Assembly: GCA_965644295.1 (NCBI GenBank)
Contig: CBFFRP010000090.1
Coordinates: 62,001-126,000, forward strand
Reading direction: 5' to 3'
DNA length: 64,000 nucleotides
Origin: Paraphysomonas bandaiensis
Lineage: Eukaryota > Protista > Chrysophyceae
Shown: piece after piece, positions 6,117-26,414 of the stretch
Position numbering within the stretch: the first letter of the stretch is position 1
How the letters are laid out: every line of letters begins with the position of its first letter
Notes under the pieces: model-generated
Told to the model about the DNA's origin: nothing
Databases searched by the model: none
The model's input: only the letters and a program-made list of their open reading frames with translations
Program-made: the position numbers and the translations under genes

Positions 6117-8193
6117 CATGAACATAACTTGATGTTGATGATGTCCTTTTTTGGAAATAATAATTATTTGTGTAGACAGTGTTGATTGCTCTATTATACT
6201 TATTTCTACAACTGAGATTTTAGCAAATTTGTACTGCTAAGATAGCATTCAAGCACTTTTAGAACCATTCTACAACAATTCTTAAAAGTCTAGTAAAATC
6301 TACTAGAATTTCCCAAATTTCTGAAAATTTCCCACGTTTGCATATTGTTTACTTTGTAGATAGAGTGATCAACCAAGAGATATTTAGCAGGTAATTGGTA
6401 TCATTTGTATTGTGATCATCAATGTTCAATAATTTCTTATCATAATTTAGATATAAGTTCTAGATACACTATATTCACCAAATACAACACGAGAGTATGA
6501 AGTTGCCGTGCAACTGATGGCAGTTACCTGAACATTAGATCTATCCCGATCTTTCATTCTAGTTACACTGTTAAGTTTTTTCAACGATCCATTTACCCAC
6601 CTTACCTTTCAATGCAGGGGTTATTCCACAAAGAATCTATAGCTTCATTAGGACCAAAGTGTTCTCTTGTATACCTAATACCTTTGTAACAACATTCTAT
6701 GTCATTATCATGCACGTTAAATACAGAGAATGGTGGGGCGTCTGTATCATAATAACCCAGAGATTCCTCGTGCTTTCAATTAGCTCAATGCTGTCAGGAT
6801 GACGTTGATCGTCCACAATCATGTCAAACGTAATAAATAGTAAGTTTTATTGTTTCATTTGTGCATCAATGTCACTCTTGGTGAGCAACATCTACGACAT
6901 AAAATACCAGGCATCGTGTGTAAGTTACCCTACACAGTGCTACACAACGAATTACAGCGATCTGAGCACATCAGCGTATCAAGCACAGTTGAATTAGTCT
7001 AATAGTAATGTCAGATGTAATGTACGAAGTACTCATGACGCGTCATGTAGGGATCATTCCATAGTATGGTGTGTATGTGACTTCCACTGACAGTGAAAAC
7101 CCGCCATGCTAACATAATTCCTACTCGTAGTGCTGTGCATCATCATCTGTATCCGTAGCGTAGCGGCGCTCTCTGCTGATGTGGGTCATCTGGATCATTG
7201 TTTTGATTGGGGATGCCGGACGCTATCTATGGATTGGTATCCCATACCCGTCTATGGAATAGCTGAAGGAGGCACAGTCTGTACATTGCATCCCTGACAC
7301 AGTCATGTGTACTAGAGTGCGGTATACGTATGAGATTGTTGAGTGGTGGGTGTGTGTATAGGCACACGGGTATGTCAACACCAGTGATGGTGATGTTCGT
7401 GGATAGAGAGCATGTATAGTACAGCACATACATGATAAGGACAGAGACATCGCTGAATTATGTATATTTATATACACTCAATTGTTAGACTCCTGATATA
7501 TCAGAACAGCAACTAAGACGGATCACAGACTCTTTGTAAGTGTTGGATTTGTAATATAAGCTCTGATGTTGTGATGTGAAAATAAAGCGATTTATTAATC
7601 GTACGAATTGAATGAAGAGCGTTGCACCACCCTTTTTCCCTTTATCAGCAGTTATAATGGAGCTCTTCAACTTTGGTCCCAAGTTACAAACCTTATGTAT
7701 GATGGTAGATGTCAATACTGGAGTGCACTTACAGATATTCAATATAGTCATGGGGTTTAATAAATTTATGTTACTATATTGTCAAAAATTTAAGTTGAAA
7801 GCATATTATATTTTGTGAATACATTGACCACGGATCATACAAATGGCCGCTCATATATCAGTATCGCTTAGCAAACCCTATTCATTTCTGTTTCACTTTC
7901 ATTATGAAAAAAATCAAATATTGTAAATGGAAGTATCCAAGATAGAATATCTAACACTAAAATATCCATCATGGTCAAGTTGAGTTCAACTGTTTGTAAG
8001 ATATATTTCTAAAGTATATTATGATTTAAGTCTTACTTGAAATATACAGTTGCGATTAACAGTATTACATACATCATGAACAAATGATATGATAGAACAT
8101 AGGAAAAGTAGTAGTGAAAATGAAATATATATTGACAGTCTGTCTGCTACCGACATATAGTTTGAAACTTTAAAATAAATTGGAATACATGAT

Positions 8194-11100
8194 TTATAAA
8201 TTAAACAGCGAAGTCACTGCACTCTGAACATGATTTCTAACAACATTTCTAACGTCTATTTCGGAGTCAACAGTATGGTTTGCTAAATTTACACGGTATA
8301 TACGAACTCCATGTGCCTCCGATAAGTACCTATCACGAACTGTATCAAATAAATTACTCCTAGGGTACTGGTGCGTTGGGCCGTCGATTTCGATGTTTAT
8401 CACTCTGCCATCGCCACTGGTGAGGAGTATATCTGCCTCGAACCCGTGAATGTATATGTTACTAGTTACTTTCGCATCCAACCCACAGTCATTTACAAAT
8501 GATTGAATTTCACGCAAAAACAGATCCTGGGTATTTGACTGACTATGCTTGACTTGACAGACACCACGAGTTTCTTTGATAGTAAGTGTGCTTACTTCCC
8601 TCAGAATCTCCACCAACCTACATTTTACATTCTCAGGTATATCTTTCACACCATGTAGAAACAAGTCGACAGATCGCCATAAATCCATCGCCCCTTCATA
8701 TCCCCACAAGGACTGACCAGTGACCTCACATGTGACGTATTCCTGTACATTGGAGGGTACTTTTTCCAGTGCAGAAGACAAAAACATACTAACCGCTACA
8801 TGCTGCGCTGACATGCCCTGAAGGCCATATAGACATTGACTAAGCGTCTGTGGAGGTAGGAGTGACAAGTCAGTTCGAATTCTTGAAGCCAGTAAACCCA
8901 ACACGTCCCTAACCTCCGGGTAGTGACTGGACATGCGCTGCAGACCATACACAGCGATCCCTATCGCTTGAGAACCCAACGGCTCATCACATGACTGCAT
9001 CTTACTGCTTAGAGCTTGCAATACAACACGGACCTCTGGATATTCGCTACTCATACCCTGAAGTCCATAAAATGCTGCACCAATCTCTGCAGGACGAAGA
9101 GCATCACTACATTGAAATATCTTAGGAGCAAGTGCAACTAGCATGTCGCGTACTTCAGAGTGACTGCTACACATGCCTTGCATACCATACAGCGCACTAC
9201 TAATATGCTGCGATTCCAGTGCACCAGGGCTAGCAGATACGTGCCCTACGAGCACACTCAGTAGTGTTCGCACTTCAGGATGATAACTAGTAAACTTTTG
9301 CATACCATACAGGGCATTCCCGACACTACAAGATGATATACGCTCCGTACACTGTCGTATCTTGTCACTCAATACAAGCACTATTTCCCTAACCTCCGGG
9401 TAACAACTAGACATACGCCTCAAGCCATAAAGCGCACTTCCAACACCCTGCTCATCAAGACCCTCACTGGACTGTTTAATCCTCTTGCTTAGACAACGAA
9501 GAAGATCCCTGACCTCCTCGTGGGTAGCAGACATACTCTGTAAACCGTACACAGCGATTCCCATCTCCTGTGGGCTCATATTGCCAGAAACCCTATCGAT
9601 ATGAGGAGTCAAATGAGATATCAGAATCCGAACTTCCTCGTAGTCACTTGACATTCCCTGGAGCCCATAGAGTGCATTCGATACAGCCTGAGGAGTGAGC
9701 TCTTGTTGGAAAGACTTGATCTTTTCCCCAAGTGATCTCACCAATTCACGGACCTCTGTGTGGTCACTGGTCATGGACTGCAGTCCATACAGGGCATTGC
9801 CAATCTCTTGAGGCCGAAGGGAATCACCACTATCATGCATACATCCACATAAAGCAGATAATAACTCTCGGACTTCTTTATACTGAGAGGACATTCTACG
9901 CATACCATACAATGCGTTTCCGATCGCTTGAGACTTCAGTGGTTCAGGAGATGCGGCTATTTTCGTTGTGAGTGCTGTCAGTAACTCCCGCACTTCAGGA
10001 TAATCAGTCGACATATTCTGAAGTCCGTATATCGCACTACCAATTTCCAGAGAACTCAATGCTTGATTCCCAAGCAGTATAAGTCTCGTCAATATAGGTA
10101 TAACCTGCCTAACTTCTGTGTGGTCACTGGTCATGGACTGCAGTCCATACAGGGCATTGCCAATCTCTTGAGGCCGAAGGGAATCACCACTATCATGCAT
10201 ACATCCACATAAAGCAGATAATAACTCTCGGACTTCTTTATACTGAGAGGACATTCTACGCATACCATACAATGCGTTTCCGATCGCCTGAGAGTTCAGT
10301 GGTTCAGGAGATGCGGCTATTTTTGTTGTGAGTGCTGTCAGTAACTCCCGCACTTCAGGATAATCAGTCGACATATTCTGAAGTCCGTATAAAGCATTAC
10401 CAAGTATCTGTGAATCTATTATTGCCTTAGATGAATAAATACGACTAGTTAGTGCAGATATTAGTTCCCGGACTTCACTGTGTTCGCAAGACATCTTTCG
10501 CATACCATATAGCACATTTCCTATGGCCTGGGCACTCAGTGGTTCGGTTGAAGATGATATATTTTTCGTGAGCGCAGATAAGAGAGAAACAACTTCTGAA
10601 TGACTAGAAGACATGTTGCGGAGGCCAAATAGAGCACCAGATATTTCCAGATCGTTCAGTGGTTCACTACACGACAAAATCTTTGTAGACAAGGAATGTG
10701 CTAATGCACAGACTTCTGCATGTTCACTTGACATGCCACGCAGTCCATACAATGCGCTAGCAAGAGAATACCGCTCCATAACAGCATCGCTCTCAATAAC
10801 ACATTGAGTCAAGATAAAAACCAATTGACGGACCTCAGAAGAATACGAAGACATATTTTTCAATCCATACAGAGAACACCCTATATCTTGACCACTAAAA
10901 TTACCCGAAACCGAAGAAAATTTCGAGGACAATATGGCCAACAAAGAACGCACCTCAGAAGATTCACAAGACATGTTCTGAAATCCAAACAAAGACTTTG
11001 ATAAAGTATACGAATGAAATAAATCATCACAATCGGATATCAGGGGTGTTAGTGCAGCCAGCATATCGCGTACTTCAGAGTGACTGCTACACATGCCTTG

Positions 11101-12492
11101 CATACCATACAGGGCATTTCCGACACTGCGTGATGATATACGCTCCGTACACTGTCGTATCTTGTCACTCAATACAAGCACTATTTCTCTAACCTCCGGG
11201 TAACAACTAGACATACGCCTCAAGCCATAAAGCGCACTTCCAACACCCTGACCATCAAGACCCTCACTGGACTGTTTAATCCTCTTGCTTAGACAACGAA
11301 GAAGATCCCTGACCTCCTCGTGGGTAGCAGACATACTCTGTAAGCCATACATAGCGTTACTCATCTCCTGTGGACTCATATTGCCAGAAACCCTATCGAT
11401 ATGAGGAGTCAAATGAGATATCAAAATCCGAACTTCCTCGTAGTCACTTGACATTCCCTGGAGCCCATAGAGTGCATTCGATACAGCCTGAGGAGTGAGC
11501 TCTTGTTGGAAAGACTTGATCTTTTCCCCAAGTGATCTCACCAATTCACGGACCTCTGTGTGGTCACTGGTCATGGACTGCAGTCCATACAGAGCATTGC
11601 CAATCTCTTGAGGCCGAAGGGAATCACCACTATCATGCATACATCCACATAAAGCAGATAATAACTCTCGGACTTCTTTATACTGAGAGGACATTCTACG
11701 CATACCATACAATGCGTTTCCGATCGCCTGAGAGTTCAGTGGTTCAGGAGATGCGGCTATTTTTGTTGTGAGTGCTGTCAGTAACTCCCGCACTTCAGGA
11801 TAATCAGTCGACATATTCTGAAGTCCGTATAGTGCGCTTCCTATATTTCTGGCTGGTAATACATCTACACACCCTCTGACGTTTTGATTTATAGAAGATA
11901 TGAGACTACGCACTTCGCTATGTCGACTAGACATTCCTCGCAAACCGTACAATCCGTTACCCACTGCCTGTGCACTGAAAGCATCGTCACACTGTGATAT
12001 CCTATACGAAAAAACACTGAGAAATTTTCTAACATCCTCATATTCGGAAGACATTCCCTTCAATGAGTATAATATCGTCCCAATGTTCCGTTCATTGAGT
12101 TTAGTCGGTATACGTTCCATATGAATAGTCAATGCTCGCAACAACTCCATTGCACCGGAACTACGACTAGATAAGACACGCAGAGCATTAAGAGACTTAT
12201 ACACATCTCCTGCAGCCATTTTCTCGCAAGTCATCAGCTCCTTTGCGATACTGCAGAGATTCAACGCAGTGATGTGTGTGTTCCTGTACCCAAAGCCGTG
12301 TAAAACTGTAGCCAGGGCGGGTATGTCGCTATTCTCTATCAGCTCCTTCAGCTGACCACCAACAGGCAATCTCTTCTTGGTATTTGGAGGACGTCGTCGG
12401 GATGTGACAGTGGAAGCACTGCTACATAGTCGTCTGGTCAGAGAGATCGAATAGGCTCTGCATGGAGACCGCCTTAATATGATTGATAGCAT
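8194..12492 (-). CDS. Helical-repeat/RAP-domain protein A: 28 x 40-aa OPR-like repeats plus RAP domain, putatively mitochondrial
   Basis: Intronless 1432-aa ORF (ATG at 12492; the ORF-track start 12495 is GTG). Arg/Ser-rich, acid-free N-terminus. Repeat consensus LxxQxIGNALYGLQxMSSxxxEVRxLLxxLxxKI. C-terminal HGFEADILL...INIEIDGPTHQY...RDRYL...GVRIYRV is a RAP-type signature. Confidence 0.85.
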   Translation of the reverse strand: MLSIILRRSPCRAYSISLTRRLCSSASTVTSRRRPPNTKKRLPVGGQLKELIENSDIPALATVLHGFGYRNTHITALNLCSIAKELMTCEKMAAGDVYKSLNALRVLSSRSSGAMELLRALTIHMERIPTKLNERNIGTILYSLKGMSSEYEDVRKFLSVFSYRISQCDDAFSAQAVGNGLYGLRGMSSRHSEVRSLISSINQNVRGCVDVLPARNIGSALYGLQNMSTDYPEVRELLTALTTKIAASPEPLNSQAIGNALYGMRRMSSQYKEVRELLSALCGCMHDSGDSLRPQEIGNALYGLQSMTSDHTEVRELVRSLGEKIKSFQQELTPQAVSNALYGLQGMSSDYEEVRILISHLTPHIDRVSGNMSPQEMSNAMYGLQSMSATHEEVRDLLRCLSKRIKQSSEGLDGQGVGSALYGLRRMSSCYPEVREIVLVLSDKIRQCTERISSRSVGNALYGMQGMCSSHSEVRDMLAALTPLISDCDDLFHSYTLSKSLFGFQNMSCESSEVRSLLAILSSKFSSVSGNFSGQDIGCSLYGLKNMSSYSSEVRQLVFILTQCVIESDAVMERYSLASALYGLRGMSSEHAEVCALAHSLSTKILSCSEPLNDLEISGALFGLRNMSSSHSEVVSLLSALTKNISSSTEPLSAQAIGNVLYGMRKMSCEHSEVRELISALTSRIYSSKAIIDSQILGNALYGLQNMSTDYPEVRELLTALTTKIAASPEPLNSQAIGNALYGMRRMSSQYKEVRELLSALCGCMHDSGDSLRPQEIGNALYGLQSMTSDHTEVRQVIPILTRLILLGNQALSSLEIGSAIYGLQNMSTDYPEVRELLTALTTKIAASPEPLKSQAIGNALYGMRRMSSQYKEVRELLSALCGCMHDSGDSLRPQEIGNALYGLQSMTSDHTEVRELVRSLGEKIKSFQQELTPQAVSNALYGLQGMSSDYEEVRILISHLTPHIDRVSGNMSPQEMGIAVYGLQSMSATHEEVRDLLRCLSKRIKQSSEGLDEQGVGSALYGLRRMSSCYPEVREIVLVLSDKIRQCTERISSCSVGNALYGMQKFTSYHPEVRTLLSVLVGHVSASPGALESQHISSALYGMQGMCSSHSEVRDMLVALAPKIFQCSDALRPAEIGAAFYGLQGMSSEYPEVRVVLQALSSKMQSCDEPLGSQAIGIAVYGLQRMSSHYPEVRDVLGLLASRIRTDLSLLPPQTLSQCLYGLQGMSAQHVAVSMFLSSALEKVPSNVQEYVTCEVTGQSLWGYEGAMDLWRSVDLFLHGVKDIPENVKCRLVEILREVSTLTIKETRGVCQVKHSQSNTQDLFLREIQSFVNDCGLDAKVTSNIYIHGFEADILLTSGDGRVINIEIDGPTHQYPRSNLFDTVRDRYLSEAHGVRIYRVNLANHTVDSEIDVRNVVRNHVQSAVTSLFNL
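8740..12099 (-). repeat. Coding tandem array of 28 x 120-bp units with near-identical duplicated blocks
   Basis: Exact 40-aa periodicity. Identical blocks recur at offsets of 360, 1440 and 1800 bp (e.g. near-identical shadow ORFs at 9732 and 11532). Confidence 0.95.
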
Positions 12493-13039
12493 CACAGTTA
12501 CTTATGAAACCCTCGCATCATATCATCATATTCATATACTTATATTCATGTGCATTGATTGGATATCGCCCTCTCACTTCGTCTTCATTGTCCGTGAAGT
12601 TTAAATAGTCTCATATACAGCAGTACATATGCAGATGTACTCTTAGCGTATATGTGTACTATCGTATAGATGTGCAGGCTATATGCGGCTATCATCCTCC
12701 ATCAAATTATTTTTTAGGGTGGACTGAATACCCTCGTAGTACACTATACTATGTACTGCTAGACTCATATGTAGAGTAGTACGGTATGTATGCGGTGGTA
12801 CTGTACAGTGAGCGGGTTGCTGACACACACTGGAGCTGCTCTTAATAGAGCGACTGGTTATATATATACCACACCAGCTCGCTATGCATATTGAGGCTAT
12901 CTACATCATGTCTTGATATGCAGTAGAGTATATATCTCAATGATTCCATCGCACTGGTGACTCATACATACATATCATGAGAGACGACTGTCACTGGTAG
13001 ACGACATATAGACATAGATATATACTGACCACTGGCTAT
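12493..13039. promoter_or_regulatory. Putative bidirectional promoter of the repeat/RAP gene pair
   Basis: 547-bp spacer between divergent ATGs, rich in alternating purine-pyrimidine tracts (tatatg, gtgtac, catac) like the other divergent spacers in the window. Confidence 0.5.
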
Positions 13040-15526
13040 ATGTGGCGCATTACAGTCAGATTGAAACGGACGACTCTGCCGACGAGACGAATTAATAGTT
13101 CAATCAAGAAGGTTGCCAAACAAAAGAATACTAGAAGCATCCCTCCTGCTATAGGGAACATACTTGATGACATTGTCGGAAAGAAAGACTTGTCTGCCAT
13201 TGCTTCATTGCTTTATTCTTGTGGAAAGAGTAAATTTGCACTTCCAAACCATGTTCTATACAGCATTGCAAGAGAAGTGCATAACTGTGCCCCAGTTACC
13301 AGTGTCAGTGATATTGACAAGTCGTTTAACGCCCTCCGTGTCTTATCCAGTCGTAGTCCCGGTGCAATGGAGTTGTTGCGAGCATTGAGCATTCGTCTTG
13401 AGCGGGTGTCAACCAAACTCACACAACGGAACATTGGGTCGATATTATTTTCATTGAAGGGTATGTCTTCCGAATATGAGGATGTTAGAAAGCTTCTTAG
13501 TATACTATCCGAGAAAATATATCTCTGTGAAGATAATTTTAGTGCACAAGCAGTGGGTAACGGGTTGTACGGTTTGCGAGGAATGTCTTGTAGTCATCCG
13601 GAGGTCAGGAAGTTACTAACAGCGCTTACTACCAGAGTAGCCGCATCATCTGAGCCACTTAACTCTCAGGCGATCGGAAACGCATTGTATGGCATGCGCA
13701 GAATGTCTTCAGAGTATAAAGAAGTCCGTGAACTGTTGTCTGTTCTTACTATAGGTATCGATGCTAGTACAGATATCATGCGAACACAGGAAATCGGAAA
13801 CGCGATATATGGCCTTCAAGGAATGTCAAGCGAGGAAAATGAAGTCCGTAGGCTACTGGCAGCAATAAAACGAAAACTTGATAACTGCAATGGATTATTT
13901 CGGCCTCAAGAGATTGGCAATGCTCTGTATGGACTGCAGTCCATGACCAGTGACCACACAGAGGTCCGTGAATTGGTGAGATCACTTGGGGAAAAGATCA
14001 AGTCTTTCCAACAAGAGCTCACTCCTCAGGCTGTATCGAATGCACTCTATGGGCTCCAGGGAATGTCAAGTGACTACGAGGAAGTTCGGATTTTGATATC
14101 TCATTTGACTCCTCATATCGATAGGGTTTCTGGCAATATGAGTCCACAGGAGATGAGTAACGCTATGTATGGCTTACAGAGTATGTCTGCTACCCACGAG
14201 GAGGTCAGGGATCTTCTTCGTTGTCTAAGCAAGAGGATTAAACAGTCCAGTGAGGGTCTTGATGGTCAGGGTGTTGGAAGTGCGCTTTATGGCTTGAGGC
14301 GTATGTCTAGTTGTTACCCGGAGGTTAGGGAAATAGTGCTTGTATTGAGTGACAAGATACGACAGTGTACGGAGCGTATATCGTCACGCAGTGTCGGGAA
14401 TGCCCTGTATGGTATGCAGAAGTTTACTAGTTATCATCCTGAAGTGCGAACACTACTGAGTGTGCTCGTAGGGCACGTATCTGCTAGCCCTGGTGCACTG
14501 GAATCGCAGCATATTAGTAGTGCGCTGTATGGTATGCAAGGCATGTGTAGCAGTCACTCTGAAGTACGCGACATGCTAGTTGCACTTATTCCCAAGATAT
14601 TTCAATGTAGTGATACTCTTCGTCCTGCAGAGATTGGTGCAGCATTTTATGGACTTCAGGGTATGAGTAGCGAATATCCAGAGGTCCGTGTTGTATTGCA
14701 AGCTCTAAGCAGTAAGATGCAGTCATGTGATGAGCCGTTGGGTTCTCAAGCGATAGGGATCGCTGTGTATGGTCTGCAGCGCATGTCCAGTCACTACCCG
14801 GAGGTTAGGGACGTGTTGGGTTTACTGGCTTCAAGAATTCGAACTGACTTGTCACTCCTACCTCCACAGACGCTTAGTCAATGTCTATATGGCCTTCAGG
14901 GCATGTCAGCGCAGCATGTAGCGGTTAGTATGTTTTTGTCTTCTGCACTGGAAAAAGTACCCTCCAATGTACAGGAATACGTCACATGTGAGGTCACTGG
15001 TCAGTCCTTGTGGGGATATGAAGGGGCGATGGATTTATGGCGATCTGTCGACTTGTTTCTACATGGTGTGAAAGATATACCTGAGAATGTAAAATGTAGG
15101 TTGGTGGAGATTCTGAGGGAAGTAAGCACACTTACTATCAAAGAAACTCGTGGTGTCTGTCAAGTCAAGCATAGTCAGTCGAATACCCAGGATCTGTTTT
15201 TGCGTGAAATTCAATCATTTGTAAATGACTGTGGGTTGGATGCGAAAGTAACTAGTAACATATACATTCACGGGTTCGAGGCAGATATACTCCTCACCAG
15301 TGGCGATGGCAGAGTGATAAACATCGAAATCGACGGCCCAACGCACCAGTACCCTAGGAGTAATTTATTTGATACAGTTCGTGATAGGTACTTATCGGAG
15401 GCACATGGAGTTCGTATATACCGTGTAAATTTGGCGAAGATATTTTATGGCTCCAACGTAGACGTTAGAAATTCTGTTAGAGATAAGATTCGGAGACTGT
15501 GTATTGAACCATTTTATAATTCATAG
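13040..15526 (+). CDS. Helical-repeat/RAP-domain protein B: 13 x 40-aa repeats (13418-14977) plus RAP domain, putatively mitochondrial
   Basis: Intronless 828-aa ORF. Basic presequence-like N-terminus (MWRITVRLKRTTLPTRR). Same repeat consensus and RAP core (about 15254-15432) as protein A. Confidence 0.85.
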   Translation: MWRITVRLKRTTLPTRRINSSIKKVAKQKNTRSIPPAIGNILDDIVGKKDLSAIASLLYSCGKSKFALPNHVLYSIAREVHNCAPVTSVSDIDKSFNALRVLSSRSPGAMELLRALSIRLERVSTKLTQRNIGSILFSLKGMSSEYEDVRKLLSILSEKIYLCEDNFSAQAVGNGLYGLRGMSCSHPEVRKLLTALTTRVAASSEPLNSQAIGNALYGMRRMSSEYKEVRELLSVLTIGIDASTDIMRTQEIGNAIYGLQGMSSEENEVRRLLAAIKRKLDNCNGLFRPQEIGNALYGLQSMTSDHTEVRELVRSLGEKIKSFQQELTPQAVSNALYGLQGMSSDYEEVRILISHLTPHIDRVSGNMSPQEMSNAMYGLQSMSATHEEVRDLLRCLSKRIKQSSEGLDGQGVGSALYGLRRMSSCYPEVREIVLVLSDKIRQCTERISSRSVGNALYGMQKFTSYHPEVRTLLSVLVGHVSASPGALESQHISSALYGMQGMCSSHSEVRDMLVALIPKIFQCSDTLRPAEIGAAFYGLQGMSSEYPEVRVVLQALSSKMQSCDEPLGSQAIGIAVYGLQRMSSHYPEVRDVLGLLASRIRTDLSLLPPQTLSQCLYGLQGMSAQHVAVSMFLSSALEKVPSNVQEYVTCEVTGQSLWGYEGAMDLWRSVDLFLHGVKDIPENVKCRLVEILREVSTLTIKETRGVCQVKHSQSNTQDLFLREIQSFVNDCGLDAKVTSNIYIHGFEADILLTSGDGRVINIEIDGPTHQYPRSNLFDTVRDRYLSEAHGVRIYRVNLAKIFYGSNVDVRNSVRDKIRRLCIEPFYNS

Positions 15527-21419: not shown

Positions 21420-24400
21420 ATGTCAGTTAAAGTTACAAGTTACGACTCAACCGACTCGGATTCAACAACCGAAAAACAGAAAGACTCAATGCCAAAGTTC
21501 GACGCGAAGAACTTCTCCAAGTGGCAGAAGAAGTGCCGTGCATGGTTTTACAGAAAGCCTAAGATCGTTTATACTCTACAGAACGATCACCCAATTGAGC
21601 CTGAAGCAGGAGAAAACTCAGATGACGAGGACTACCAGTATCGACTCGAACAGTATCAGGATGCGAAACGATATTATGATGAAGGTAATAACTACCAATG
21701 GTCAGTCATTGCAAGCTCTATCATTGGTCAGGATGAAGAGGCTGAGGGGATTTTGGAGAACGTCCCCGATGGAGACGGAAAAACCGCCTGGACGGACTTG
21801 CTCAACCACTTCAAAGAAAAAACGACTAACGATGTAATCACCGATCTGATTGGCCAGTTTCAGAGCATAAAAATCAAAAAAGGTCAGTCGATAATCAACT
21901 TTCTTGACGCTGTCGAAAAGCTCCGAAACAAGCTGATTAATTATGGTCATCGGATAAGTGACCAAGATCTCATATCACGCATTCGACAAGGCCTGGTATC
22001 CAAAGAAAATATGACGTATCGAGAACTGGCAATCAACCTGCAGATGCACCCTATCGATGACTACAAAACACTCATACGCAGACTACGCGGATTAGGAAGC
22101 TCATCTGTAGGAATGCTCTTGTCAAGCAACGAAGAAACAAAAACCGACAGTATTCAGCTTGCAGCCTCAAAACCCCCATTTTTCAAAAGTAAAGTGAATT
22201 CCAAGCGCAAAAAGGGGACATCTTTCAGAAACCGTTCCAATAAACCGAAACATGACAAGAGAACTGACAAGGACATTAAGTGTTTCCGATGCGATGGAAA
22301 AGGACACATCGCTTCAGAATGCAAACACTCATGGGAAAGGATCCAACAAATGAAGAGTTCCTCTGGAAACAAATCAACCAGTAGGAAATTCAAAAAAGTT
22401 AGATTCCAGACCCACCAGAGCACTGAAAACGACGAATCCGACCAGTTTGCAGATTATGAAGACAGTGGTCCACTACAACAGAAAGGACGAGACTTCGGAG
22501 GAGTCGGATATCCAACAAACGACGAAACGAACTTCGTTTTTGATCAAGAAGCCGGAATGGGAACCCTTGATTCTGGCTGCACAGTCTCCATCACACCTGA
22601 AGCCGGATACATCACCAATTATGAGGAATGCCTCACCGACATTCAAACAGCTAAGTCAGGATCGACTATGACCTCTTCAGGACATGGAAGACTTGGTATT
22701 ATCCCCAAGTGCAAGCACGTGGACCATGCTTCGAGGACACTCGTGTCCATCAGCCAATTAGATGACCTAGGGTATAAAATCTTGTTCGGAAACCAATCAG
22801 TTGAGATATATAAAGATGAAATACTGCTATCAAAGGGTAAGAGAGTTGGAGGCCTATATGAAATTCCATTAACAGACCTCGGTACTCCTATTGACGAATC
22901 CCACCTTGCTTCAACTGCTTCAGGCCCACTCGCAACTCTAGCACATAAGAGATTGGCACATTCTTCAATTGGACTCATACAGAAAGCTGTACAGTCAAAA
23001 TTAGTAACGGGTATTAAGTTAACGAAGTCGGAGATGAATGCTACTTCTTTACCGGGTGGCCTATGTGATGGTTGTGCTAGTGGTAAATCTCATCGCCGAA
23101 AACATAGACACGCTATCAGACAAATGCTGCTCAAGCGTGTAAGAAGAGCAAATGAGCTGGGGGAGCTAGTAGTAGCCGATTTTTCTGGACCCCATGCACC
23201 AGAGGCAATCATTACTGGCAACCGTTACATACTCGGGATGACAGATGTAGCTTCCAGACACCAATGGGACTCCTACGGACCAACGAGAGATGAAGATTTC
23301 GTCATCCAATCCATCCAGAAAGTTGTCATGTATCTACATAGTAAAGGCAAACGACTACAACATTATCATGCGGATGGGGGGAAGGAGCTGGTATCAAGAA
23401 AAGTTCTAGAGTATCTTCAATCAATAGGGGCTACATGGACTTTCAACTCCCCGTATACCCCCGAGGATAACCCATTCCAAGAGCGATCATGGCGGACAAC
23501 TAAAGAACGAGCACTCAGCAGCCTTATCGACTCTGGACTCCCACCGAATTTCTGGGAACAAGCCTCAAAGGCGACAATACACATCAAGAACAGGTTACCG
23601 TGTCAAACAGCTAAAGGATTTATGTCTCCACTTCAGTTTATCGAAAACGAAATACCAGACTTGAGTTATGCCAGAATATGGGGATGTAAATGCTTTGTGA
23701 ATATCGATTCCAGTCTCCGAAAGAACAATTGGGACAGACATAGCTGGCCTGGGTATTTTATGGGCTATCGAGAGGATGGTCCTGGATATATAGTCTTTGT
23801 TCCCGCATTAAGAGATTTTGTTATATCAGGACATGTATTTTTCAACGAATGTGTTCCACCAGCGGATAAGAGATATTTTAAAGAGATAAATGAGATCTTC
23901 AGAGAGAATGAGACCTCCAGGACAGTAGAAAGTTTCAAATATCTCATAGGTCTAGCTCATGTAGATCCAGACGATGGATTAACATATGTAACGACTCAAA
24001 TAAAGCTCAGAAAAGGATTAATCGCAGCGTATCGTGGTCTAGTGGACGACAGCGGTGACAAGACACGACTCATCCAGCTCGACGACCCCATTCATGCTGC
24101 AGACGTCGAAAAGTACACTGAAGAATACATAGAACTCAAAGCAGTTGGTCTCAAATGTAATACTTCTCGATCTAAAACCCCAATACATAAATCCAGCAAA
24201 TCAGATCGAGACCCCGATACAGTTAATGGATCTCCAGCGCCAGCCGCTACTTCCAGGGGGAGTGGCGTGAATCGAAGACATCATGATGCCGCGCAGGAGA
24301 GAATCAGCAGCCATCGGTGTGAACCTACCCACTCCGATGCAAAGATAGCGAAGACTCGCCCTTCGAAACAATTCAATGGGAATCTAGTGCCGAATCCGGC

Positions 24401-26414
24401 ACCACACGGTCAAGTGGATCGTGTGCGTCAGCGTGTGGCCAAACGCTGCAACAAGCCTGCTGATTCATCGGGAGATTGGGAAAATCAGGGTACACCTGAA
24501 GGGCCAAGTAAGGTCCGTGCTACAGCAAAACAACAATTTTTAGCTGGTAGAAAGAGTGTTCTCCGAAGCAGGAGAATGGCCAGGAAACGGGTAATCGTAA
24601 ATATACATAAACTTGGTGATGGTGTATATACATGTGATGTAAATGCTAAACATGTAGTAAATCATATGGCACATGACACACAATGTATATCAAAATTACA
24701 TACTAACAATATTGATATTGTTATGCATGCTATCAGTAATTGCGATGACATTGACGAGCTAACTGATACACCAAAGAGTGTTCAAGATGCTATTTCAGGT
24801 AAATATAAACAGCAGTGGATCGATGCTATCAACAGAGAAATATCCACTCTTCAGAGGAAAGGGTGCTGGAGATACACTGCGTTACCACCTGGAGCAAGAG
24901 CCATAAAGGGGAAACTCATATTCAAAATAAAAAGAAAACAGAATGATATCAAATTCAAGGCTCGACTAGTCGCACAGGGTTTTACTCAAATCCAAGGCAT
25001 CGATTACAATGATACATACAGCCCCGTCGCGAAGGCTACATCCCTACGTACAATTATTGCCCTTTCGACTATTATGAAACTCAAATTGCACCAAATCGAT
25101 TTCACAACTGCGTACATCAATGCTGACCTCGAAGAGGACATATACATGTATCCCCCTCCTGGCATGGACGTCCCTGACGGAAAAGTCCTCAAACTGATGA
25201 AAAGCATCTATGGTCTAAAGCAAGCAGGTCTTAACTGGTATAAGTGCTGTACAAATTTTATGCTAGATATGGGTTTCACCAGACTAATATCTGACCCGTG
25301 TATATTCAAAAAGCAGATTAATGGCAGGATTATGCTAATAGCCATGTATGTGGACGATATTATTATAGCATCTACATCCGACACTGATATCCAACAATTC
25401 AAAGATCATTTATCCAAAAAGTTCGAAATTACGGATCTCGGACTCCTAGATTATTACTTGGGCATCTCCATTCATCAAGATTTTGACAAAAATATCACGA
25501 CTCTCAGTCAGGAGCAGTATGTCAGAAAACTGCTGGACAAATTCAACATGTCCAACAGTAAACCCATGTCAACACCTATGTTACTGTCTTTCAACTATGA
25601 TTTACATGAATACAATCATCTTTCAGAGTCAAATCAAAGTTATGTTCAGAATTTCCCCTACAAGGAGCTCATAGGTTCCCTGATGTATCTAGCTGTATGC
25701 ACTCGACCGGATATCGCCTACGCAGTCAATACTCTTGCCAGATTTTCTGATATGCCTAATCTAACTACCTGTAATGCTGCGTTACATGTTCTTAGGTATC
25801 TCAAAGGCACTGCTAAGCAAGGATTGATATATTCTGGATCCCACATAACATTGTCAGGATACTGCGATAGCGATTGGGCACGATGTCACCTCACTCGACG
25901 GTCCACTACAGCTTTTACATTCTTCATAGGTAATTGTCTTATATCATGGCAATCTCGATTACAGACAACTGTGGCATTGTCATCTACTGAAGCTGAGTAT
26001 ATGGCTCTATCGTCAGCAGCTCAGGAAGCATTATGGCTACGCTCTTTATTATCAGAAATTGGTTTCAAACTTCCATTCTCAACAACTATTTGGTGCGATA
26101 ATAAAGGGGCAGTCCAATTATGCTACAATCCTACTCATCATCGTCGTACGAAACATATTGCGATACGGTATCATTTCATTCGAGAAAATATTGCCGAAAA
26201 CCAATTGACTGTTGACCATATTCCCACCACGTCAATGTTAGCCGATCTTCTCACGAAACCACTAGGAACAACTAATTTTCTTCAATTGCGAACTACATTG
26301 ATGGGGGGAGCTGGGTTCGACATCCCATCCAGCAGCAACAGAAAGCGATCAACAACCTCAGAGACACCTAAATCACAATTAACAAGCCACAAGCGACCTA
26401 GGTGGCTAGTTTGA
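21420..26414 (+). CDS. Copia Gag-Pol polyprotein (Gag, zinc knuckle, protease, integrase, RT, RNase H)
   Basis: CFRCDGKGHIASEC; LDSGCT; HKRLAH...CDGC; integrase D..D..E (ADFSGP / HADGGKE / NPFQER); KARLVAQGF...YVDD; GYCDSDWA...STEAEY. Integrase precedes RT (Copia order). Confidence 0.97.
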   Translation: MSVKVTSYDSTDSDSTTEKQKDSMPKFDAKNFSKWQKKCRAWFYRKPKIVYTLQNDHPIEPEAGENSDDEDYQYRLEQYQDAKRYYDEGNNYQWSVIASSIIGQDEEAEGILENVPDGDGKTAWTDLLNHFKEKTTNDVITDLIGQFQSIKIKKGQSIINFLDAVEKLRNKLINYGHRISDQDLISRIRQGLVSKENMTYRELAINLQMHPIDDYKTLIRRLRGLGSSSVGMLLSSNEETKTDSIQLAASKPPFFKSKVNSKRKKGTSFRNRSNKPKHDKRTDKDIKCFRCDGKGHIASECKHSWERIQQMKSSSGNKSTSRKFKKVRFQTHQSTENDESDQFADYEDSGPLQQKGRDFGGVGYPTNDETNFVFDQEAGMGTLDSGCTVSITPEAGYITNYEECLTDIQTAKSGSTMTSSGHGRLGIIPKCKHVDHASRTLVSISQLDDLGYKILFGNQSVEIYKDEILLSKGKRVGGLYEIPLTDLGTPIDESHLASTASGPLATLAHKRLAHSSIGLIQKAVQSKLVTGIKLTKSEMNATSLPGGLCDGCASGKSHRRKHRHAIRQMLLKRVRRANELGELVVADFSGPHAPEAIITGNRYILGMTDVASRHQWDSYGPTRDEDFVIQSIQKVVMYLHSKGKRLQHYHADGGKELVSRKVLEYLQSIGATWTFNSPYTPEDNPFQERSWRTTKERALSSLIDSGLPPNFWEQASKATIHIKNRLPCQTAKGFMSPLQFIENEIPDLSYARIWGCKCFVNIDSSLRKNNWDRHSWPGYFMGYREDGPGYIVFVPALRDFVISGHVFFNECVPPADKRYFKEINEIFRENETSRTVESFKYLIGLAHVDPDDGLTYVTTQIKLRKGLIAAYRGLVDDSGDKTRLIQLDDPIHAADVEKYTEEYIELKAVGLKCNTSRSKTPIHKSSKSDRDPDTVNGSPAPAATSRGSGVNRRHHDAAQERISSHRCEPTHSDAKIAKTRPSKQFNGNLVPNPAPHGQVDRVRQRVAKRCNKPADSSGDWENQGTPEGPSKVRATAKQQFLAGRKSVLRSRRMARKRVIVNIHKLGDGVYTCDVNAKHVVNHMAHDTQCISKLHTNNIDIVMHAISNCDDIDELTDTPKSVQDAISGKYKQQWIDAINREISTLQRKGCWRYTALPPGARAIKGKLIFKIKRKQNDIKFKARLVAQGFTQIQGIDYNDTYSPVAKATSLRTIIALSTIMKLKLHQIDFTTAYINADLEEDIYMYPPPGMDVPDGKVLKLMKSIYGLKQAGLNWYKCCTNFMLDMGFTRLISDPCIFKKQINGRIMLIAMYVDDIIIASTSDTDIQQFKDHLSKKFEITDLGLLDYYLGISIHQDFDKNITTLSQEQYVRKLLDKFNMSNSKPMSTPMLLSFNYDLHEYNHLSESNQSYVQNFPYKELIGSLMYLAVCTRPDIAYAVNTLARFSDMPNLTTCNAALHVLRYLKGTAKQGLIYSGSHITLSGYCDSDWARCHLTRRSTTAFTFFIGNCLISWQSRLQTTVALSSTEAEYMALSSAAQEALWLRSLLSEIGFKLPFSTTIWCDNKGAVQLCYNPTHHRRTKHIAIRYHFIRENIAENQLTVDHIPTTSMLADLLTKPLGTTNFLQLRTTLMGGAGFDIPSSSNRKRSTTSETPKSQLTSHKRPRWLV

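Follow-up and report, generated by a model that had tools for sequence, protein, structure and literature searches.

A 28-Repeat Array in Paraphysomonas bandaiensis Is Probably a Mosaic of In-Register Recombination

Introduction

PPR-RFL, TALE, PRDM9, and LRR genes provide well-known examples of in-register conversion among repeats and paralogues. TALE and PRDM9 proteins consist of fixed-length tandem modules that recombine in register, giving new module orders; their modules are near-identical along their whole length, recognize DNA through a known code, and differ among strains or individuals in how many there are and in what order. The RFL-PPR clusters of plants undergo unequal pairing; the accompanying gene conversion or crossing-over duplicates single motifs, moves them to new places, and gives rise to chimeric genes (PMC5075784). 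OPR-RAP proteins, including those of the Chlamydomonas NCL cluster, join helical repeats of 38–40 amino acids (aa) to a C-terminal endonuclease-like domain; their genes make up clusters of tandemly duplicated, diversifying paralogues whose products act on organelle transcripts (PMC8635915, PMC13126933). Here we describe two genes with a similar architecture, gene A and gene B, in a 64,000-nucleotide (nt) stretch of DNA from Paraphysomonas bandaiensis (GenBank assembly GCA_965644295.1, contig CBFFRP010000090.1, positions 62,001 to 126,000), hereafter the window. The two form an old head-to-head pair and belong to a nuclear gene family with at least 30 members in this marine protist. We consider it highly probable that A and B form a pair of RAP-like solenoid genes and that the gene A array is a mosaic built by at least five non-reciprocal, in-register homologous recombination events.

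Fixed-length helical-repeat RNA-binding proteins are candidate designer RNA tools, and the evolution of their specificity has been little studied beyond land-plant PPRs. The A/B locus offers a dated, base-resolved series of block copies in a family with very regular 40-residue repeats, from an algal lineage that has received little study. An earlier sequence-only reading of this DNA had proposed that gene A was assembled by shuffling of repeat modules with crossovers in two conserved motifs, and we followed up its claims by computational analysis.

Results

Coordinates are positions in the window, nt positions inside a repeat count within the 120-bp unit, and genome-wide searches refer to the source assembly of 62.5 Mb in 669 contigs. 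The window is eukaryotic in content. Gene A (8194–12495, minus strand) is an intact, uninterrupted open reading frame (ORF) of 1432 aa with its ATG at 12492. It encodes, in order, a basic N terminus free of acidic residues, a degenerate repeat (R0), 28 repeats of 40 aa, a second degenerate repeat (R29), and a nuclease-like end domain. The repeat unit is 120 bp, with the consensus LSSQDIGNALYGLQSMSSDYPEVRELLTALTTKISACTEP. We kept the original numbering, in which Rn starts at 12099-120(n-1), as it yields 28 clean 40-aa repeats together with the degenerate R0 and R29. Gene B (13040–15526, plus strand) is a paralogue 828 aa long; it has 13 repeats, all of exactly 40 aa. The genes lie head-to-head and have in common a 1.58-kb inverted tract as well as the divergent 544-bp intergenic region between them (12496–13039), whose two sides cannot be aligned to each other.

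Comparing the repeats in register and by BLAST, we found that unrelated repeats are on average 49% identical. Against this background, three tracts of 277–734 bp in gene A were 97.4%–99.6% identical. The longest extends from R3 nt 28 to R9 nt 41 (11098–11831, minus strand) and recurs from R18 nt 28 to R24 nt 41 (9298–10031, minus strand), with 19 differences in 734 nt (97.4% identity). A shorter tract, from R15 nt 28 to R17 nt 65 (10115–10391, minus strand), differs at one of 277 positions from R3 nt 28 to R5 nt 65 (11831–11555). Finally, 10403–10115 (R15–R17) is 97.9% identical to 10043–9755 (R18–R20). One block is thus present three times at near DNA identity, as R3–R5, R15–R17, and R18–R20. 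On both sides of every young tract, identity drops from at least 97% to approximately 50% within a few nucleotides, and the contrast between tracts and flanks gave chi-square p values of 1e-60 to 1e-115.

All of these tracts respect the repeat register. When we scanned gene A against itself in 200-nt windows, identity of at least 80% was reached only at offsets of 360, 1440, and 1800 nt, all multiples of 120, and the top offset not divisible by 120 reached 42%. The proposal that every junction preserves the 120-bp register therefore holds, as does the broader proposal that gene A is a mosaic of repeat blocks. Gene A has also exchanged sequence with gene B: between A5 and A9 nt 41 (11618–11099) and the corresponding part of B (B5 to B9 nt 41, 13899–14418), we counted only 3 differences in 520 nt (99.4% identity). 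R5–R9 thus recur both as R20–R24 and as repeats 5–9 of gene B.

The sequences that adjoin the tracts are of a different kind. The first helices leading into the three block copies are mutually unrelated, with 10 of the first 28 nt differing and next-best matches of at most 67%, which agrees with the claim that each copy is entered from its own first helix. The copies are spaced 3, 12, and 15 repeats apart with unique sequence in between. An 83-bp spacer (10032–10114, minus strand), which consists of the second helix of R17 and the first helix of R18 (R17b-R18a), separates two of them, and we found no donor for it in either gene or elsewhere in the genome. A unique core (10392–11050, minus strand), comprising the R9 tail, R10–R14, and the R15 first helix, occurs once in the genome and is old. 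As had been claimed, R10–R14 have no counterpart in B (52%–63% identity), and we found none elsewhere in the 62.5-Mb genome. Nor did we find donors in A, B, or the genome for the flanking pieces R3a, R15a, R18a, R17b, R2b, and the R9 tail.

One explanation for such an array is plain tandem duplication by unequal crossing-over, followed by ordinary divergence, without gene conversion. With 28 repeats in A and 13 in B, duplications must have happened at some time, and Tandem Repeats Finder reports a 360-bp period at 9759–10530. However, a single unequal crossover yields a contiguous tandem copy, whereas here identity ends abruptly on both sides. R17b-R18a is unlike R20b-R21a; R3a, R15a, and R18a all differ; the copies lie 12–15 repeats apart with the unique R10–R14 between them; and point mutation could not have put 10 differences into 28 nt directly beside a segment with 1 in 277. 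We therefore regard tandem duplication without conversion as unlikely. Since unrelated sequence flanks each tract on both sides, non-reciprocal recombination in register fits better. The suggestion of homologous recombination among repeats thus stands insofar as exchange is in register, but the products are patches unrelated to their surroundings on both sides, not the outcome of single unequal crossovers.

Two features do resemble products of unequal exchange. R9 (11020–11139, minus strand) is a hybrid repeat in which nt 0–41 are B9-like, nt 23–88 are 93.9% identical to B10/A25, and the tail from nt 88 is unique; the offset moves by one unit within the ALYGMQ codons common to B9 and B10. The chimeric nature ascribed to R9 is thereby borne out. 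In addition, gene A has one unit more than B in A2b-A3a. The one-unit shift in R9 and the surplus unit indicate that changes in repeat number occurred too.

A second alternative is that near-identity reflects selection or convergence on identical protein modules rather than recent copying. Synonymous sites argue against it. Within the tracts these sites are nearly identical as well (1–19 differences in 277–734 nt, synonymous sites included), whereas unrelated repeats differ at 49%–74% of them. Comparison of the two long copies revealed 10 codons with synonymous and 6 with non-synonymous differences, indicating that tract identity is not maintained by selection on the protein; these counts also gave no sign of positive selection between the young copies. 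As an account of the tracts we give this alternative almost no credence.

The alternative does stand for R0–R2, where A and B had been described as alternating between near-identical and divergent half-repeats. The halves are identical mainly as protein, and several differ at 33%–51% of synonymous sites (51% for NALRVLSSRS, 43% for FSAQAVGNGL), so constraint shapes part of the A/B pattern. Part of the alternation reflects purifying selection, acting on helix A and on the YG..MS..EVR motif, rather than recent exchange. The last 10 codons of A4 (11620–11649) and of B3 (13748–13777), where helix B ends and the linker follows (CGCMHDSGDS versus TIGIDASTDI), show approximately 12 non-synonymous and approximately 1 synonymous differences and adjoin well-conserved codons. 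The cause is either diversifying selection acting locally or the replacement of a patch.

The inverted repeat that joins the two genes spans 1.58 kb. Its A arm (8236–9818, minus strand) extends from R20 to 14 codons ahead of the stop and is 97.9% identical to the B arm (13899–15481, plus strand), which extends from B5 to 15 codons ahead of the stop. Site patterns pair A5–A9 with B5–B9 and A24 to the end with B9 to the end. The best match to B from repeat 5 onward is A5 to A9 (nt 12–20) joined to A24 to the end, with 9 differences in 1535 nt; the collinear match, A20 to the end, has 22. Either copying from A, with the template jumping over 15 repeats, gave B its 3′ part, or A20–A24 changed later. 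Several of the A20–A24 changes are clustered. One cluster (9544–9574, minus strand), in the first helix of R22, consists of seven substitutions that turn SNAM into GIAV, and four of the six changed sites in its core agree with R27/B12; the cluster may be a micro-conversion.

The A-B conversion tract terminates within the last helix of the nuclease-like domain. The final 13–14 codons of A (8197–8235) and B (15482–15523) are unrelated, despite the near-identical 1.58 kb just before them.

As a mis-assembly would undo these results, we examined Logan contigs of four short-read runs (X1, X5, X11, and X13), which are labeled as four different organisms. A long-read assembly could have expanded one R3–R9 block or mixed A and B reads, and two observations favor such an artifact: none of the runs has a contig on 9466–9987, and no single record spans the array. 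Against it, contigs of X1, X5, X11, and X13 contain the unique junctions (the R15 first helix, R17b-R18a, the R9 hybrid, and the R24 continuation), and the diagnostic junctions were reproduced in independent assemblies of the four runs. X1 and X5 share an identical contig over 10362–11095, which leads from the R9 hybrid through R10–R14 into R15. Other contigs cover the R24 continuation (9163–9361), R4/R5 (11589–11734), and R3 through the intergenic region into B (11802–13100). In X13, one contig (9955–10142) crosses R17 nt 65, the unique spacer, and R18 nt 28, and another (10366–10607) crosses R15 nt 28 but extends only 25 nt beyond it, short of the 31 nt that we required for bridging. Moreover, fixed-site differences distinguish the three block copies from one another.

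Contig depth, which is not itself a copy number, was 31–40 in X1 and 81–96 in X5 for unique sequence, expected once, and 75 and 151 for sequence common to A and B, expected twice. For R5–R9 it was 118 and 194, and for R4b-R5a, which is not in B, 102 and 258, with three copies expected of each. Both segments are therefore at approximately three times the unique depth, whereas a single-copy block would give twofold and onefold values. The junction-spanning contigs and the depths, which fit 1, 2, 3, and 3 copies, make mis-assembly very unlikely. Assembly support is good, not final.

Three candidate variants did not survive inspection. The loose contig ends at 9325 and 11060, considered as alternative haplotypes, are weak matches, 30–52 nt long, of the paralogue on contig C424 (19.6–20.2 kb) that passed the 90% threshold. 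The joints from 10346/11786 to 11929 arose from gene B sequence in the same X1 contig that had been matched onto A, and a cluster of differing letters at 11968–12120 in X1 likewise stems from gene B sequence in the same contig.

As all four runs show the same junctions, the recombination events predate those samples. X13 (organism D) carries a 28-nt insertion at 7939, directly downstream of gene A, and its contigs at the A/B locus differ from the window by 0–5 letters each. X13 therefore represents a different strain, yet one with the same mosaic junctions. A scan of metagenome contigs with the A-specific R10–R14 peptide found no relative, in a set from which near-identical records may be missing. 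Poly-A metatranscriptome runs contain approximately one-third of the sequence words of the locus, which hints that it is expressed.

Crossovers had been placed in the conserved YGLQ and EVR motifs. Unrelated repeats are most conserved in DNA sequence at nt 30–47 (YGLQxM) and nt 60–71 (EVR), and the youngest junctions are located at these two peaks of conservation. In gene A, junctions fall at nt 28 (three times), nt 41, nt 65, nt 0 (the A5/B5 boundary), nt 12–20 (the B9 switch), approximately nt 51–60 (R2), and nt 88 (the R9 tail). Five of these approximately nine lie at the motifs; the rest coincide with the border between two repeats or fall within a helix. Tract ends in two paralogues, on contigs C66 and C424, fall at approximately nt 113, 70, 74, 92, 15, and 32–40. 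Combining A/B with the two paralogues, 8 of 15 junctions lie within motif windows that cover 32% of the repeat, an enrichment that is not significant (binomial p = 0.08, or p = 0.22 with the three nt-28 junctions counted once). A motif preference is plausible, since exchange needs homology to start and resolve, but what remains of the claim is a tendency and not a general rule.

Divergence provides a relative order for the events. It is 2.6% between R3–R9 and R18–R24, 0.5% for the A-B exchanges, and 0.4% between R3–R5 and R15–R17; by this measure, the R3–R9/R18–R24 exchange is the oldest, and the A-B exchanges and the copy of R3–R5 onto R15–R17 are the youngest. At nt 26 of R5, R17 and R20 have C and A5 and B5 have T, a pattern that suggests that the R15–R17 copy came before the B-linked change of A5.

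We propose that a 734-bp patch was exchanged between R18–R24 and R3–R9 and that a 277-bp patch from R3–R5 was later copied onto R15–R17. Exchange between the inverted genes would have homogenized the 3′ 1.6 kb of A, and also A5–A9, with B from repeat 5 to its end. An older event would have fused a B9-like and a B10-like repeat inside their common ALYGMQ codons to give R9, and a fifth would explain why A2b-A3a and B differ by one repeat. Such patches could come from double-strand-break repair, through gene conversion or template switching onto pre-existing repeats in the same register, with exchange starting and resolving where repeats are most alike.

What gene A encodes is probably an organelle RNA-binding protein. 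An AlphaFold2 model of gene B repeats (pLDDT 93.8) predicts a regular α-solenoid in which helix A spans residues 3–11, a nine-residue loop contains GLQxMSS, and helix B spans residues 21–36. Tandem helix-pair repeats of 38–40 aa in an α-solenoid, the feature of OPR-type proteins that we looked for, are present 28 times in A and 13 times in B. The closest solved folds are organellar RNA-binding solenoids, namely RESC proteins, PPR proteins, and chain 7pkt_O of the Chlamydomonas mitoribosome. Pfam, which has no OPR model (PMC13126933), gave weak sub-threshold matches to DUF1601 only.

The last 200 residues are modeled (pLDDT 83) as a helical linker followed by a PD-(D/E)XK nuclease-like core of the RAP/DUF559/Vsr-like kind (8203–8550, minus strand, in A), the arrangement of a RAP-like fold. 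The pattern D, E.DG..H, D, R (D123, E137, D139, G140, H143, D156, and R169) is invariant in 42 homologues. The structural matches are I-Bth0305I (3r3p, Z 11.8), a T. gondii mitoribosomal protein (Z 11.3 over 178 residues), the DUF559 protein 3hrl (Z 10.8), Vsr (1cw0, Z 10.6), and the FAST1-FAST2-RAP module of human FASTKD4 (Z 9.8 over 167 residues). RAP and HPR proteins are reportedly carried by the T. gondii mitoribosome (PMC11652630). In the closest ESM Atlas cluster (TM 0.65), 76% of members have Pfam RAP, and a further cluster (TM 0.61) combines RAP, RESC6, and FAST_1. By sequence, the MTES_1575 profile matches the end domain at E 1.8e-4 and 21.9 bits, under its 38.2-bit cut-off, and a search of solved structures recovered only DUF559 3hrl (E 0.0075).

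The N termini of A and B are basic, with no acidic residues for approximately 43 residues, which suggests mitochondrial import. Taken together, the predicted architecture of basic presequence, 40-residue solenoid, and C-terminal PD-(D/E)XK domain matches organellar OPR/FASTK-RAP RNA-binding proteins.

Other members of the family share the habit of copying blocks. The C66 and C424 paralogues, each of more than 1100 aa, have in-register tracts of their own at multiples of 120 nt: repeats 7 and 20 of C66 are 97% identical, as are repeats 17 and 20 (99%) and 8 and 22 (90%) of C424. Among foreign homologues, 3 of 120 have internal tracts of at least 90% identity, mostly at multiples of 40 aa. Within the family, gene A shows this habit in its most extreme form. 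Homologues found by protein search are eukaryotic metagenome and transcriptome proteins, with E values down to 1e-206 and 25%–44% identity, and the nearest named ones are from chrysophyte/ochromonad stramenopiles. As this search found no orthologue closer than 33%–44% identity, repeat order is not comparable across species.

Two further paralogous loci deserve mention. In the paralogue on contig C107 (67513–72474), at least 12 repeats are mutually approximately 76% identical at every multiple of 120 nt, and the downstream match contains five stop codons; this array may be homogenized or decaying. Family-member matches at C298:10221–11885 and C473:2345–4009 are identical, with equal scores and spacing, and are probably a haplotig or duplicated contig end. 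In the window itself, 6 kb from gene B, lies an intact copia-type polyprotein ORF (21420–26414, plus strand; 1664 aa) with gag, zinc knuckle, integrase, and RVT_2 domains.

Discussion

Several points weigh against our interpretation. Conversion is not strictly separable from two successive crossovers or from template-switch insertion, and the direction of A-B exchange is ambiguous, since the 13 extra differences in A20–A24 may be later changes there. The contigs that support the assembly are all from short reads, none spans a whole duplicated block, and the variants specific to the second long copy within 9466–9987 have no independent sighting. We detected no structural polymorphism and no alternative joint in the four runs, in contigs that cannot exclude rare variants. 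At the protein level, RNA binding, localization, and activity are predictions. Profile searches with Pfam RAP (PF08373) gave no match in the end domains at E ≤ 10, in the whole proteins at E ≤ 0.01, or in the whole genome at E ≤ 1, and Pfam FAST_1 and FAST_2 were also unmatched. As the fold matches and the Pfam RAP model does not, we call the end domain RAP-like rather than a member of the RAP family.

The sequence-only reading also held that recombination rewrites a recognition string. This wording presupposes a one-repeat-one-base code, and none is known for the gene A family; ongoing rewriting is unproven. The proteins are predicted to bind RNA, with an end domain that would be an active nuclease, and block copying would change which RNA is bound. 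A natural test lies in the three copies of the 2.3-repeat module, which should bind the same short RNA string if the repeats read RNA modularly. A bolder proposal, which we put forward as a long shot, is that A/B is an actively diversifying locus of programmable organellar RNA-targeting nucleases, generating new specificities at a measurable rate in natural populations, as a protist counterpart of plant RFL genes driven by conflict with the organelle genome. Under this proposal, exchange between the 1.58-kb inverted arms and in-register patch copying would create new repeat orders and with them new RNA specificities.

The closest documented parallel to the A/B locus is the RFL-PPR genes of plants. 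Like A and B, whose targeting is predicted, they are nuclear, clustered, and encode organelle-targeted helical-repeat RNA-binding proteins. They differ in having a 35-aa repeat of another family with a known recognition code, and polymorphism between accessions and a link to mitochondrial conflict have been documented for them, unlike for A/B. At the A/B locus, exchange is mostly within one gene and between an inverted pair.

In architecture, the closest system is the Chlamydomonas NCL OPR-RAP cluster. The A and B genes belong to a stramenopile rather than a green alga, lack a Pfam RAP match (the best end-domain score is to MTES_1575/DUF559), and have unusually regular repeats of exactly 40 aa in which in-register block copying is visible in the DNA. 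The FASTK family and the apicomplexan RAP/HPR proteins are also comparable, as the end module superposes on FASTKD4 and on T. gondii mitoribosomal proteins, but their repeats are 37 aa long or irregular, and A and B have no Pfam match to the FAST_1, FAST_2, and RAP domains. We know of no description of recent repeat shuffling in these proteins.

The likeness to TALE and PRDM9 arrays that had been drawn for gene A extends to recombination in register but found no support in polymorphism, given the identical junctions in the short-read contigs of four runs. Most gene A repeats are approximately 50% identical, with a few young blocks among them, in contrast to the uniform modules of TALE and PRDM9. 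Set beside all of these systems, gene A is a clear example of a modular protein reshaped by recombination, but one with precedents.

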